A DNA stretch of 64,000 bases from Oikopleura dioica (lineage: Eukaryota > Animalia > Chordata): NCBI GenBank assembly GCA_907165135.1, contig OU015569.1, positions 8,308,001 to 8,372,000 on the forward strand, in the 5' to 3' direction. Positions 49,696 to 52,752 of this stretch are shown one piece after another. A program made the translations under genes and the position numbers. A model generated the notes under the pieces. It saw only the letters and a program-made list of their open reading frames with translations, made no database searches and was not told the DNA's origin. Positions within the stretch are counted from its first letter, which is position 1. Every line of letters starts with the position of its first letter.

Positions 49696-49753
49696 TCGCG
49701 AAGACGATTTCCGGCTAGTACATCTGAATTGCAAAAAATAAGAGATGGATTGA

Positions 49754-52294
49754 TTACTGAAAATCAGTAGAATCAAGATCAATGAGCACAGATTCACTCT
49801 CGTCGGTAGAGTCTTCAGTGAATTCACTTGAAAGTTCCCACTTTTCAAAGCCGGGCCAATCTTTCCGCCGAAGCGTGCCTTTTCCGCGAAAAACGCCCAT
49901 TGATCCATTCTCTTTGAAGCTGGTGGCGAAAACGCCACTATAAAAGTGGCTGGAGTGGCACTCGTTCGCCTTCATATGGGTTTTGCCAGACATAAATTGC
50001 TGCAGTTGAGGTGCTATCGAGATCGTGCCCTTTTCATCTTCCTAAATTTATGGAAATGTAAACGAAATAAAACTGAGTCCGACTACTTTTTGTTGTTTTT
50101 CAAGCAGCACATTCATCAGCACACCGGTAGACGCGAAATTCCCATCACACGTGTAACAATAGCGCAATTCATCTTTTCTGTCGTCTTCGTGAAAAATGCC
50201 AAGTCGTGAGGCAATAAAATCGTCCCGTAGATTTACTTGGCCGAAAGTATGCCACAGCCCTGTCGATGGAGACCTGGCCTCTACCTTGATCGATCGCATA
50301 GATGAAAATTGCAAATTGGTGATTCCAGACTCCACCACTCGGTACTCGATTTGGAACGAGGATAGAATATTTTCAATAGCGCTGAGATTAGCAAAGAATG
50401 CTTTCTCAGATTGCCGCGAAGTTCTGGACACGGAAACGAAAGGAAACTCGGTCGATTTTTGATCTCCTCTTTTGAAATCAGTGAAAAGATGATGAGTTTG
50501 TTTTCTTTCAAAATATTCGAATTTTCGAGAGATGACAGCAGAATGCAGATGATAAATAGACTCTTCGCGAGCTTGGATGTTCTTATCGCTCAGTTTTGGG
50601 CCACAGAAAGCCTCTTTGACAAAGGGCCCTGGCCGTTTAGATGAAACGTACTCCAAATGACCAGACATCGCCAAAACACTCAACATATACTTTTCAAGAG
50701 CAGAATAAAACTCTGCCAGTTGCCCATAATAGATCAAGGACTTGCTCGAATCATGTTGATTGCTGTTAACGATTATCTCATGGTCGAATAACTGTTTCAA
50801 CTGATCCGCAGTCAGTCCTTTTTTAGACGTTTCTTGCTTCGAAGTTTTTAGCACCATATCTCGCTCTTTTGTTTGCGAAGAAATAGCGTTAGGAATCGCT
50901 AGGGCGTCTTTGAAAAGAACATATTCAGCATGTTGTTTTTTGAGAAAGCATTTATTCGATTCATTCTTCAAATGCTTCACATGGTCTTTTTTCTGGATAA
51001 AAACATTCAATATTTTACATACTATAGTAATACATATGTAATACATAGTGTTTGACTCAATACTATAATGATCAATTACTTTCTCTATATGTCGAATTAA
51101 TCCGTGCCTAAAGCAGCAGCTTTCGCCGCCTTGAATCTCTTCAACTCGTCGTGTCCTTTTGTCGAGCACTAAAAATTACTGACACACTTGAATGCAAATG
51201 AAAGATACCTTTTTCTCTGCGTCTAAACTGAACTTTTCATCGAATTTTTCTTGTTCCTCGTTCCATAAATTACTCGCCTTCTTCGCGTGACTTATTGCTC
51301 CAAGAAGATTCTTTTTCGAAGAAATTACATTTTCTACGGCGTCACTCGGCAGAGATCTGAGGCTGCAAAGTTTTTGGAAGCGAAAAAAGGACTTTTCAAT
51401 GGCATCGACGTTGAGCCGCGGTCGACGGATGCGCTTGTACATGAACGCAGTGAATAAATCTGATTCACTTGTGATTTCCCCATTTCTCAGCTTTATATGT
51501 ATTTCTGCAGGCGTTACACGCTCGTCCTGAGCGCTTACAATTTTCTGAACATGCTCAGAGATCGTTAAACTCCCGCTGCTTTCTTTCTTTTTGTTTTTGC
51601 TCAGTAAGTCAACTATTTCTTTGTCCAAGTTCAATTTGGAAAAACAAGGCAGCTCTTCCGAAGCGTACTCAAGACTTCCTTCCCAAAAGTTTTTCTCAAA
51701 GCTCATTTGATCGGTGATTCCTGAAGACCATCTTCTCTCAATAGAGTCGATTGTCTCTTCGTCCAGAATAGTTTTCAATCTTTTCCAGCGCACGTCCGCG
51801 GGCGAGCCTATCGAAAGCTTCGCAAACTCCTCGCTGTAGCTTCTGTTATATTTCTCAAGTAGAAGACTTTCAAAAAAGCTGATCGAGGTAACGACATCGT
51901 GCGCAGAGTAAGGTTTTCCTTGCTTGAGGCGCCAACCAGGCGTTCGTACTCCTGATATTCCTTCTTTGTGAAAGTATTTACTGTAAAATATGACAAGATG
52001 GAGGCGCACAGTCGGATTTGCTGTTAAAAATTTTTCATTGAACTCGTGAAGATCCCTGTGTTTTGTATTCTGCTTTCGTACAGGAGGCTTTCTCCCAGTA
52101 AGTATTTCCTTAGCCAAATATTTAAGATCGTTTGATTTCTCTTCAGCGATTTTTGTCTTCATTTTGCTCAGGGACTCTTCAAGTGGGACTGCTGTTGGCT
52201 TTAGCCACTCTAGATTGTCTTTGAGGAGCAAGTTGGACGACGACAAACTCCGCGAGAGCACTATCGGCCGAACTCGCTTTGGAATTGAAATCAT
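49754..52294 (-). CDS. Mitochondrial seryl-tRNA-synthetase paralog with degenerate catalytic motifs (SLIMP-like) and a long N-terminal extension
   Basis: Presequence MISIPKRVRPIVLSRSLSS; RPRLNVDAIEK...(SerRS arm); DALAIPN; YYGQLAEFYSAL; EYRVVE...SIKVEARSP...FGQV...DDFIASRLGI...LRYCYTCDG...LMNVLLEKQQ|EDEKGTISIAPQLQQFM. Confidence 0.75.
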
Positions 52295-52752
52295 TCTATA
52301 AACATTTCTTCTTTTAATTTCGCGTTTTCCTTTCGGCAGTTTATTTCTTGGAGCCCTGGAGACACAAACGTGGGCAGCTAGTTACGAAAGGCCTCGACAG
52401 TGGTACAGCAGGTTATGAACTTCAGGAAATAATTACGCAGCTGGTGCGGGGCCTTGATTACCATTATTCGGCCAAAGGCGCCTCAGTCTTCTATCGAGTC
52501 TCTCGAGTCTTCTCTCGAAGTTTTCTGAAATATGAATCATTCCAATATATTTAATACTAACCTAAAATTACCGTAGTCTCTCAAAACTTCGATCAACTCT
52601 TGTTCATCCATTTGCAACTCTTTTCAGCTCTTGAATGTCTCAGTAAGATATGAGAACAAGTTTTTGAATTATGTACAGGTTTATTAGTAAGGATTTGTGA
52701 AATCAATAGAAATATGTACAGTTTTTAAAACATATCAAAAGTCGACAGTGTG

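Follow-up and report, generated by a model that had tools for sequence, protein, structure and literature searches.

A conserved pseudo-synthetase gene of Oikopleura dioica, probably derived from a mitochondrial-type seryl-tRNA synthetase and extended at both ends

What does a chordate do with a seryl-tRNA synthetase (SerRS) whose active site has decayed, and is such a protein SLIMP under another guise? These questions are raised by a locus in a window of 64,000 nucleotides (the whole stretch of O. dioica DNA that we analyzed), which the initial annotation had read as a SLIMP-like dead mitochondrial SerRS. SLIMP is a monophyletic clade that arose when SerRS2 was duplicated at the root of the bilaterians; it is defined by a collapsed pocket and a kept coiled-coil and always occurs alongside SerRS2-alpha (PMC10570016). 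Most invertebrate bilaterians are reported to have it and chordates not to have retained it (PMC10570016), so the annotation's description of it as mainly an arthropod protein is outdated. The reading that we prefer, and regard as reasonably probable, is that the locus encodes an expressed pseudo-synthetase derived from a bacterial/mitochondrial-type SerRS, most likely a former SerRS2, that was kept for a non-catalytic role. The gene model is as follows, with all coordinates given in the window:

52294-49754, minus strand: SerRS-derived nuclear gene of Oikopleura dioica, four exons, 777 codons
51209..52294, minus strand: exon 1, 362 codons, delimited as an open reading frame (ORF)
51208-51169, minus strand: intron 1, GT-AG, 40 nt; its retention introduces an in-frame stop
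51108..51168, minus strand: exon 2, 61 nt, predicted basic tip of the coiled-coil arm, with a conserved K-[RK]-F-K-A-A-K
51107-50986, minus strand: intron 2, non-canonical GC-AG, 122 nt
50087..50985, minus strand: exon 3, predicted second arm helix, 'AIPN' motif and class II catalytic core up to motif 3
50086-50042, minus strand: intron 3, GT-AG, 45 nt, placed by conservation, spanned by no read of the window's own lineage and present also in L001; its retention introduces in-frame stops
49754..50041, minus strand: exon 4, last SerRS strand (GTISIAPQLQQFM), conserved tail of ~47 residues (HFYSGVFA...WPGF) and acidic end
49756-49754, minus strand: stop codon TAA, at the end of exon 4
49723..49726, minus strand: spliced-leader acceptor of the next gene (LLGL-family), ~28 nt past the stop

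The product thus begins with a presequence-like N-terminus, followed by an orphan region of ~280–300 residues, the SerRS arm with the class II core, and a conserved C-terminal tail of ~70 residues. Homology searches and structural models were run on each exon separately.

At the first junction, the SerRS-like part could instead be a separate operon gene, trans-spliced at 51169, behind an independent upstream ORF (52294-51176). The downstream neighbor is indeed trans-spliced, O. dioica is rich in operons, and the exon 1–exon 2 junction is spanned by no reads of the window's own lineage. However, 32 RNA reads from three runs of a sister lineage (X6-X8) match up to 51209 and then continue in frame with the exon 2 sequence of that lineage (L003). 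Exon 2 lacks a start codon, the lineages do not share the first Met of exon 3, and the position and phase of intron 1 are conserved in L001 and L003, that is, across three lineages. An upstream ORF and a SerRS-like ORF are likewise paired in a distant relative. Since RNA reads run from the upstream ORF into the SerRS part, the two belong to one gene, as initially annotated, and the two-gene arrangement is the least probable of all the alternatives considered here. The locus is accordingly one expressed four-exon gene, with its exon 1–exon 2 join read in the sister lineage.

Both introns anticipated at the outset exist, with shifted boundaries: intron 1 runs from 51208 to 51169 instead of 51210-51170, and intron 2, first drawn as GA-AG at 51102-50993, is GC-AG at 51107-50986 in a spliced contig of metatranscriptome X1, which is identical in sequence to the window and omits 50986-51107. 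L001 and L003 carry intron 2 in the same place but with GA-AG ends. A further in-frame intron of 42 nt within exon 4 (49991-49950) was suspected because reads break at 49949, and was rejected, as homologous sequence runs on without a gap in L001 and in the reads themselves. Beyond the stop codon, the loose end of the X1 contig at 49726 corresponds to positions 20–37 of the O. dioica spliced leader, and the next gene encodes an LLGL domain (E 4e-13); the SerRS-derived gene and this LLGL-family gene form an operon-like pair.

The relationship of the central part to SerRS was recovered by several profile and structure comparisons. Exon 3 alone matched the SerRS structure 1ser (HMMER, E 7.6e-5) and the TIGR00414 serS profile (E 1.1e-5), the latter at 24.6 bits, far under its cut-off of 301.65. 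The family profile reached E 3.6e-8 against bacterial SerRS, and in hhalign it aligned to canonical SerRS at E 1.6e-13, with 269 columns spanning the 'PN' motif through motif 3. The AlphaFold2 (AF2) model of exon 3 (pLDDT 74, pTM 0.73), built from an alignment that included SerRS sequences, retrieved SerRS for all of its best 50 PDB matches in Foldseek (TM 0.72–0.77); for the core, the language-model atlas likewise returned nothing beyond generic SerRS, and an atlas structure match reached TM 0.81. When exon 3 and exon 1 were used in word-based protein searches, Oikopleura-lineage contigs alone were retrieved, and a further search with two SLIMP-like sequences gave no named relatives. The SerRS catalytic-domain framework noted from the outset is therefore present, and the predicted structure keeps the SerRS fold and the motif 1 region.

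With regard to the type of SerRS from which the gene descends, the family profile scored 36 bits against bacterial SerRS, 25–26 against the mammalian mitochondrial enzymes and 18.6 against human cytosolic SerRS; given this order, sequence comparison favors descent from the bacterial/mitochondrial type. A duplicate of cytosolic SerRS (SARS1), or a pseudo-synthetase of the cytosol or nucleus whose role is unrelated, would agree with the nearest language-model cluster, 'Serine--tRNA ligase, cytoplasmic', although its value of 0.88 falls under the 0.9 trust level, and with a distance of only ~7 bits between the mitochondrial and cytosolic scores. The order of the scores points the other way, as does the N-terminus, which in every lineage is basic and rich in Ser and contains no acidic residue, and we regard a cytosolic or nuclear protein as quite improbable. 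Residues 1–30 of exon 1 have a presequence-like composition, with five Lys/Arg and no Asp/Glu in the first 25, which suggests import into mitochondria.

Between the N-terminal region and the core, the predicted helices indicate that a long basic SerRS-type coiled-coil arm is retained, although Pfam did not match a Seryl_tRNA_N domain. The first long arm helix would occupy residues ~286–362 of exon 1, where a partner helix predicted at residues 317–361 comes from a poor exon 1 model (pLDDT 37). On the exon 3 side, 'AIPN' follows a confidently predicted helix (residues 2–28, pLDDT 80–88). The arm carries a net charge of +12 over 127 residues, and conserved Lys is abundant. In SLIMP, recognition of the tRNA T-arm uses a conserved arginine of the arm (DmSLIMP R123, human R146).

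In contrast to the framework, nearly all of the catalytic invariants have been exchanged. The two degenerate motif regions are:

50426..50494, minus strand: degenerate motif 2 region (HHLFTDFKRGDQKSTEFPFVSVS), located by MAFFT and hhalign alignments
50099..50149, minus strand: degenerate motif 3 (CDGNFASTGVLMNVLLE), located by HMMER alignments to 1ser and 2dq3 and by hhalign

In motif 3, Val (50122-50120) takes the place of the invariant Arg (R386 of T. thermophilus) in all of these alignments, which bears out the replacement noticed initially; the motif reads DGNFASTGV in four of four O. dioica lineages, against the canonical NGSGxAxxR. Motif 2, canonically fRxE, a loop Arg and HQFxKVE, has a loop ~10 residues shorter and lacks FRxE and the loop Arg; neither MAFFT nor hhalign aligned a conserved residue to its R, its E or its loop R. 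Motif 2 had been called unrecognizable, and while its erosion is clear, the wording was too strong: R172/D174 of exon 3 form a possible vestigial R-x-D that could be a remnant of the motif 2 RxE, within a stretch (exon 3 residues 128–175) that AF2 modeled at pLDDT <50. No TxE motif could be aligned by HMMER or hhalign, and E-x-SS-x-S appears as T/S-F-G/A-Q/N-V-N (E343 to T/S, S345 to G/A, S346 to Q/N, S348 to N), with further replacements at Q354 (I/V), R356 (S) and T380 (N). TxE, E..SSxS and T380 are elements that we take to bind serine and the adenylate in the T. thermophilus enzyme. With the ATP- and serine-binding residues gone, aminoacylation has very probably been lost. A catalytically dead SerRS-type protein was indeed suspected at this locus; the motif losses, together with the O. 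dioica spliced leader on the mRNA of the next gene, place such a protein in a chordate.

That the protein might be the sole mitochondrial SerRS, still active through an unusual active site, would be in line with the R-x-D remnant, with the high conservation of the pocket-lining stretches between lineages, and with another mitochondrial SerRS being unreported (PMC11384887). On the other hand, replacements affect the Arg of motif 3, the loop Arg of motif 2 and the Thr, Ser and Glu that bind serine, the distant relative has degenerated differently at the same positions, and no mitochondrial tRNA-Ser gene is known for O. dioica (PMC11384887). An active enzyme is thus very improbable. Similar decay is found elsewhere: the degenerate bacterial SerRS paralogues P0011 and P0013, recovered by an exhaustive search, share a class II core with an eroded motif 2 and a replaced motif 3 Arg, and carry the Seryl_tRNA_N arm. 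Unlike the O. dioica protein, they are bacterial, of unrelated origin (a separate clade, 100/99) and devoid of extensions. Another match of that search, the repeat protein P0008, was set aside as a chance match inflated by repeats.

The extensions set the protein apart from the SerRS to which its core is related. Exon 1 residues ~31–285 constitute an orphan region, predicted to be all-helical, for which profile searches of Pfam, NCBIfam and PDB gave no matches and the language-model atlas returned nothing; across profile, word-based and atlas searches, its homologues lie within the same gene family only. The ~280 extra residues originally noted between the presequence and the arm are therefore real and have no homologue beyond the gene family in these searches. 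The C-terminal tail, too, had no profile match in Pfam, NCBIfam or PDB, and as judged from these comparisons the N-terminal region of ~280 residues and the tail of ~70 residues are lineage-specific.

All parts of the gene are under strong purifying selection. Across four O. dioica lineages, dN/dS is 0.05–0.11 for the gene, with 0.06–0.09 for exon 1 and 0.04–0.11 for exon 3; for exon 4 it is 0.16, and of the 19 sites at which this exon differs from the sister lineage, 12 are third codon positions. Orthologues of exon 1 share 73–74% identity, the degenerate pocket stretches are nearly unchanged between the O. dioica lineages, and the motif 2 stretch is almost invariant across them. The arrangement extends to a distant marine relative (L008), in which an N-extension ORF (24% identity to exon 1, E 7e-9), a dead SerRS ORF and a tail follow in the same order; in an in-frame join test, a canonical 43-nt intron could connect the ORFs. 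The tail motif of exon 4 also recurs there.

With the architecture established, we return to whether the gene is a true SLIMP orthologue, kept in appendicularians and lost from other chordates, which would act as it does in Drosophila: as the inactive, arm-bearing subunit in a heterodimer with a so far undetected SerRS2-alpha, as a regulator of mtDNA linked to LON, or as both. The architecture agrees with the published definition (PMC10570016), in that this SerRS paralogue of mitochondrial type likewise has a collapsed pocket and a kept coiled-coil arm, and both share a change from Q to a hydrophobic residue in 'DFQ'. SLIMP has also been described as fast-evolving yet conserved and essential (PMC10570016), a profile to which we liken that of the O. 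dioica protein. An exhaustive search of 1.8 billion proteins gave only 14 matches, among them two of three SLIMP-like animal sequences, and in our phylogeny the family is sister to these three. The support for this grouping is nonetheless low (58/35), long branches attract, and the tree contains the SLIMP-like sequences as unnamed entries, with named SARS1, SARS2, SLIMP, SerRS2-alpha and chordate SerRS2 left out. Moreover, hhalign scored higher against canonical SerRS (99) than against the SLIMP-like set (77), and the same changes occur in the degenerate bacterial paralogues. With a tree support of 58/35 and a profile that is not closer to the SLIMP-like sequences, SLIMP orthology is not supported, although it keeps a minor probability.

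Several biological differences argue in the same direction. SLIMP, which chordates are reported not to have retained (PMC10570016), always occurs with SerRS2-alpha, an active partner that has no arm, and with mitochondrial tRNA-Ser genes, and for O. dioica neither a mitochondrial SerRS nor a mitochondrial tRNA-Ser gene is reported (PMC11384887). SLIMP furthermore has no counterpart of the ~280-residue orphan region and has lost its C-tail, where the O. dioica protein has a new one. We therefore consider a SLIMP orthologue unlikely and a former mitochondrial SerRS (SerRS2) the most likely source. From the initial comparison with SLIMP, the collapsed pocket and the retained arm (the latter partly inferred) stand, while the phylogenetic check returned only a weak SLIMP placement beside three unnamed sequences, and orthology is the less likely reading.

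SARS2, the mammalian mitochondrial SerRS, is the likely ancestor type. It has the same fold as the O. dioica protein (PDB 1wle and 7u2a; TM 0.71–0.74) and is similarly bacterial-type, with an arm and with N- and C-terminal additions, which in SARS2 are specific to mitochondria. Unlike the O. dioica protein, SARS2 works as an active homodimer whose motifs 2 and 3 are intact, and its N-helix and C-tail, both short elements that bind tRNA, have no detectable similarity to the O. dioica extensions.

Appendicularian mitochondria have lost nearly all of their tRNA genes; for O. dioica, PMC11384887 gives a mitogenome with tRNA-Met only and an HMM survey that scored the mitochondrial SerRS as absent. 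On these two statements, the initial suggestion of a duplicate adapted to aberrant mitochondrial tRNA-Ser becomes unlikely, and a SLIMP-type heterodimer would have no known tRNA-Ser gene or SerRS2-alpha partner. With its catalytic residues gone and two extensions added, a gene that is expressed and conserved must have acquired another job. The loss of mitochondrial tRNA-Ser genes may have freed SerRS2 from catalysis, leaving a non-catalytic dimeric tRNA/RNA-binding protein that would carry or hold cytosolic tRNA-Ser after its import, or pair with a dual-targeted cytosolic SerRS. SerRS arms recognize cytosolic tRNA-Ser. Among the mechanisms considered, such a tRNA/RNA-binding protein is the most likely, at somewhat less than an even chance; next comes a SLIMP-type scaffold role in LON protease and mtDNA control, itself rather unlikely.

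Mitochondrial synthetases have been put to comparable uses elsewhere: the yeast pre-mitochondrial LysRS precursor is a carrier in tRNA-Lys import, and the fungal mitochondrial TyrRS CYT-18 acts in intron splicing. By analogy, the O. dioica protein may likewise be a mitochondrial synthetase scaffold for RNA handling, with the difference that LysRS and CYT-18 are still active enzymes. A broader proposal, which we advance speculatively and hold to be slightly less likely again than a SLIMP-type role, is that appendicularian mitochondria keep dead synthetases, SerRS included, as presequence-bearing carriers or holders that escort cytosolic tRNAs into the organelle or inside it, with the extensions serving as import or docking modules.

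If the preferred reading of a former SerRS2 is correct, the mitochondrial SerRS of O. dioica, scored as lost together with the mitochondrial tRNA genes by the survey in PMC11384887, would have persisted as a scaffold that selection maintained and that gained extensions once catalysis had become useless. Gene inventories that deduce loss from intact-motif HMMs would be corrected accordingly. The gene would represent a chordate counterpart of, or parallel to, SLIMP, which is itself reported absent from chordates, and a natural experiment in synthetase functions beyond charging, and it may make the supply and handling of tRNAs in tRNA-less animal mitochondria approachable by experiment.

Between positions 52294 and 49754 of the window, three long minus-strand ORFs occupy differing frames, and our model of this SerRS-like gene comprises four exons and 777 codons:

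52294-51209, minus strand: exon 1 (1086 nt)
51208-51169, minus strand: intron 1, GT-AG
51168-51108, minus strand: exon 2 (61 nt)
51107-50986, minus strand: intron 2, GC-AG
50985-50087, minus strand: exon 3 (899 nt)
50086-50042, minus strand: predicted intron 3, GT-AG
50041-49754, minus strand: exon 4 (288 nt)

An RNA contig and reads show that the gene is transcribed and spliced. One contig from metatranscriptome run X1, whose sequence equals that of the window, skips positions 50986-51107; this 122-nt intron places the end of exon 2 at 51108 and the start of exon 3 at 50985. Donors at this site vary: the window has GC-AG, the orthologous contigs L001 (~1934-2205) and L003 (~1250-1327) have GA-AG, and the length of the intron across the three ranges from ~78 to 272 nt. 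The initial annotation had considered that the upstream reading frame, its '372-aa ORF', might be a separate gene. Three runs that bear the same species label (X6-X8) provide raw oligo-dT RNA reads that, at <90% identity to the window, align over 51209-51256; 32 of these reads run on into sequence without a window match. This continuation is exactly exon 2 of L003, a genomic contig of a sister lineage, in which a GT donor immediately after the homologous '...AEKK' codon precedes it by 44 nt. Exon 1 is therefore spliced in frame to exon 2 in the sister lineage, and the upstream ORF is part of one gene. Three X8 reads instead pass at window position 51206 from exon 1 into sequence similar to intron 1 of L003, and probably represent unspliced pre-mRNA of that lineage. 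In-frame stops and the same intron in L001 point to intron 3, whereas a further suspected intron at 49991-49950 was rejected, as L001 and the reads are uninterrupted across it.

An X1 contig of the next gene downstream has a loose end at 49726, the reverse complement of which corresponds to positions 20-37 of the published 40-nt O. dioica spliced leader (PMC6883708); the acceptor lies at 49723-49726 (minus strand). The downstream gene, extending on the minus strand to about 48300, carries an LLGL domain (PF08366, E 4e-13) and belongs to the LLGL/lethal-giant-larvae family. It receives the spliced leader ~28 nt past the SerRS-like stop codon, a spacing that makes the two genes an operon-like pair. 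On the other side, only ~50 nt (52295-52348) separate the SerRS-like start codon from a plus-strand ORF beginning at 52348, itself without a Pfam match, an arrangement suggestive of a very compact bidirectional promoter region; the 'tttatag' immediately 5' of the ATG could be a spliced-leader acceptor.

For a single protein, the sequence evidence for SerRS descent is weak (PDB 1ser, E 7.6e-5; TIGR00414, 24.6 bits against a cut-off of 301.65), and HMM surveys would consequently overlook the gene. The SerRS catalytic framework proposed in the initial annotation is nevertheless borne out at the family level: the family profile matches Aquifex and Thermus SerRS (E about 4e-8), and an hhalign comparison with three canonical SerRS aligns 269 columns, 'PN' motif through motif 3, at E 1.6e-13. 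An AF2 model of exon 3 (pLDDT 74, pTM 0.73, with low confidence precisely around motif 2) recovers SerRS chains as all of its top 50 PDB matches; in the Atlas it matches a SerRS cluster at TM 0.81.

The residue roles used below we take in part to be those of the T. thermophilus enzyme. Other assignments follow PMC10570016. All four O. dioica lineages compared carry replacements at most of the invariants defined from three canonical SerRS: motif 2 has neither FRxE nor the loop that bears its Arg, the loop being ~10 residues shorter; E-x-SS-x-S has become T/S-F-G/A-Q/N-V-N; DFQxRR reads DFIASR; T380 (T. thermophilus numbering) is Asn; and the motif 3 Arg is Val. The motif degeneration noted earlier thus stands for motif 3 and the FRxE loop, qualified at motif 2 by a conserved R-x-D that could be a relic of RxE. 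This caveat aside, the substitutions make catalytic activity very unlikely.

The protein is under strong constraint, with dN/dS of 0.04-0.11 in exons 1 and 3 and 0.16 in exon 4 (0.09-0.11 for unsaturated pairs), and the degenerate pocket stretches are themselves nearly invariant among O. dioica lineages. The predicted arm segments are basic (net charge +12). The N-extension has no similarity in Pfam, NCBIfam, PDB or the Atlas, and the C-tail none in Pfam or NCBIfam. Two contigs depart from the common pattern. L002 (87% identical) tracks the window as far as '...APQLQ' in exon 4 before diverging wholly (~1125 to contig end), through either chimeric metagenome assembly or a genuine difference in structure that would remove the conserved C-tail; in L004, a low-coverage metagenome contig, the frame of the N-terminal coding region (1-240) does not match that of L001, probably through assembly error.

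An exhaustive search of 1.8 billion representatives returned only 14 matches. Among them, P0007/P0020, from TARA metagenome contigs, share ~21% identity with exon 3 and are also degenerate at catalytic positions. An ORF of 387-399 residues lying 70 nt upstream shares 24% identity with exon 1 (E 7e-9), and a canonical intron of 43 nt (GTAAGA...TTTTAAG) would connect this ORF in frame to the SerRS-like one; the tail that follows has the same F-Y-[SA]-G...WPG[FY]E pattern as the O. dioica C-tail. This three-part architecture of N-extension, dead core and tail is therefore older than the lineage split. Two further matches of this search, the bacterial SerRS paralogues P0011 and P0013, retain an intact Seryl_tRNA_N arm, have an eroded motif 2 and lack the motif 3 Arg. 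They group in a clade of their own (100/99) and may represent a class of dead SerRS in bacteria.

SLIMP, which arose at the bilaterian root, kept its arm and lost its pocket, invariably occurs together with an arm-less SerRS2-alpha and did not persist in chordates (PMC10570016). Three unnamed hits, P0014, P0017 and P0024, resemble SLIMP in their degenerate motifs; the only full-length PDB matches of P0014 and P0017 are mammalian mitochondrial SerRS, the best match outright for P0017. In an LG+C20 tree without named reference sequences, the Oikopleura family is monophyletic (97/97) and joins these three with support of only 58/35, while its hhalign scores are 99 against canonical SerRS versus 77 against the SLIMP-like set. 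SLIMP orthology is the less likely reading. PDB profile scores (bacterial 36 bits, mammalian mitochondrial 25-26, human cytosolic 18.6) favour a bacterial/mitochondrial-type origin. Since only tRNA-Met was found in the O. dioica mitogenome and all mitochondrial aaRS except Gly, Phe and Met were scored as lost (PMC11384887), we favour descent from a SerRS2 whose catalytic function went once mitochondrial tRNA-Ser had been lost, the protein being retained in a non-catalytic capacity.

The fold, predicted arm and extensions are conserved and the catalytic residues are gone. Such a protein would be imported into mitochondria, may dimerise via the conserved motif 1 region and could bind nucleic acid through its basic arm. 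A SLIMP-like LON/mtDNA scaffold appears rather unlikely, and other structural roles share what remains beside it and our preferred reading. That preference, held at somewhat less than an even chance, is that the SerRS-like protein may bind tRNA or RNA as a holder or carrier, with imported cytosolic tRNA-Ser as one possible ligand; in this it would be analogous to yeast pre-LysRS, which serves as a carrier.
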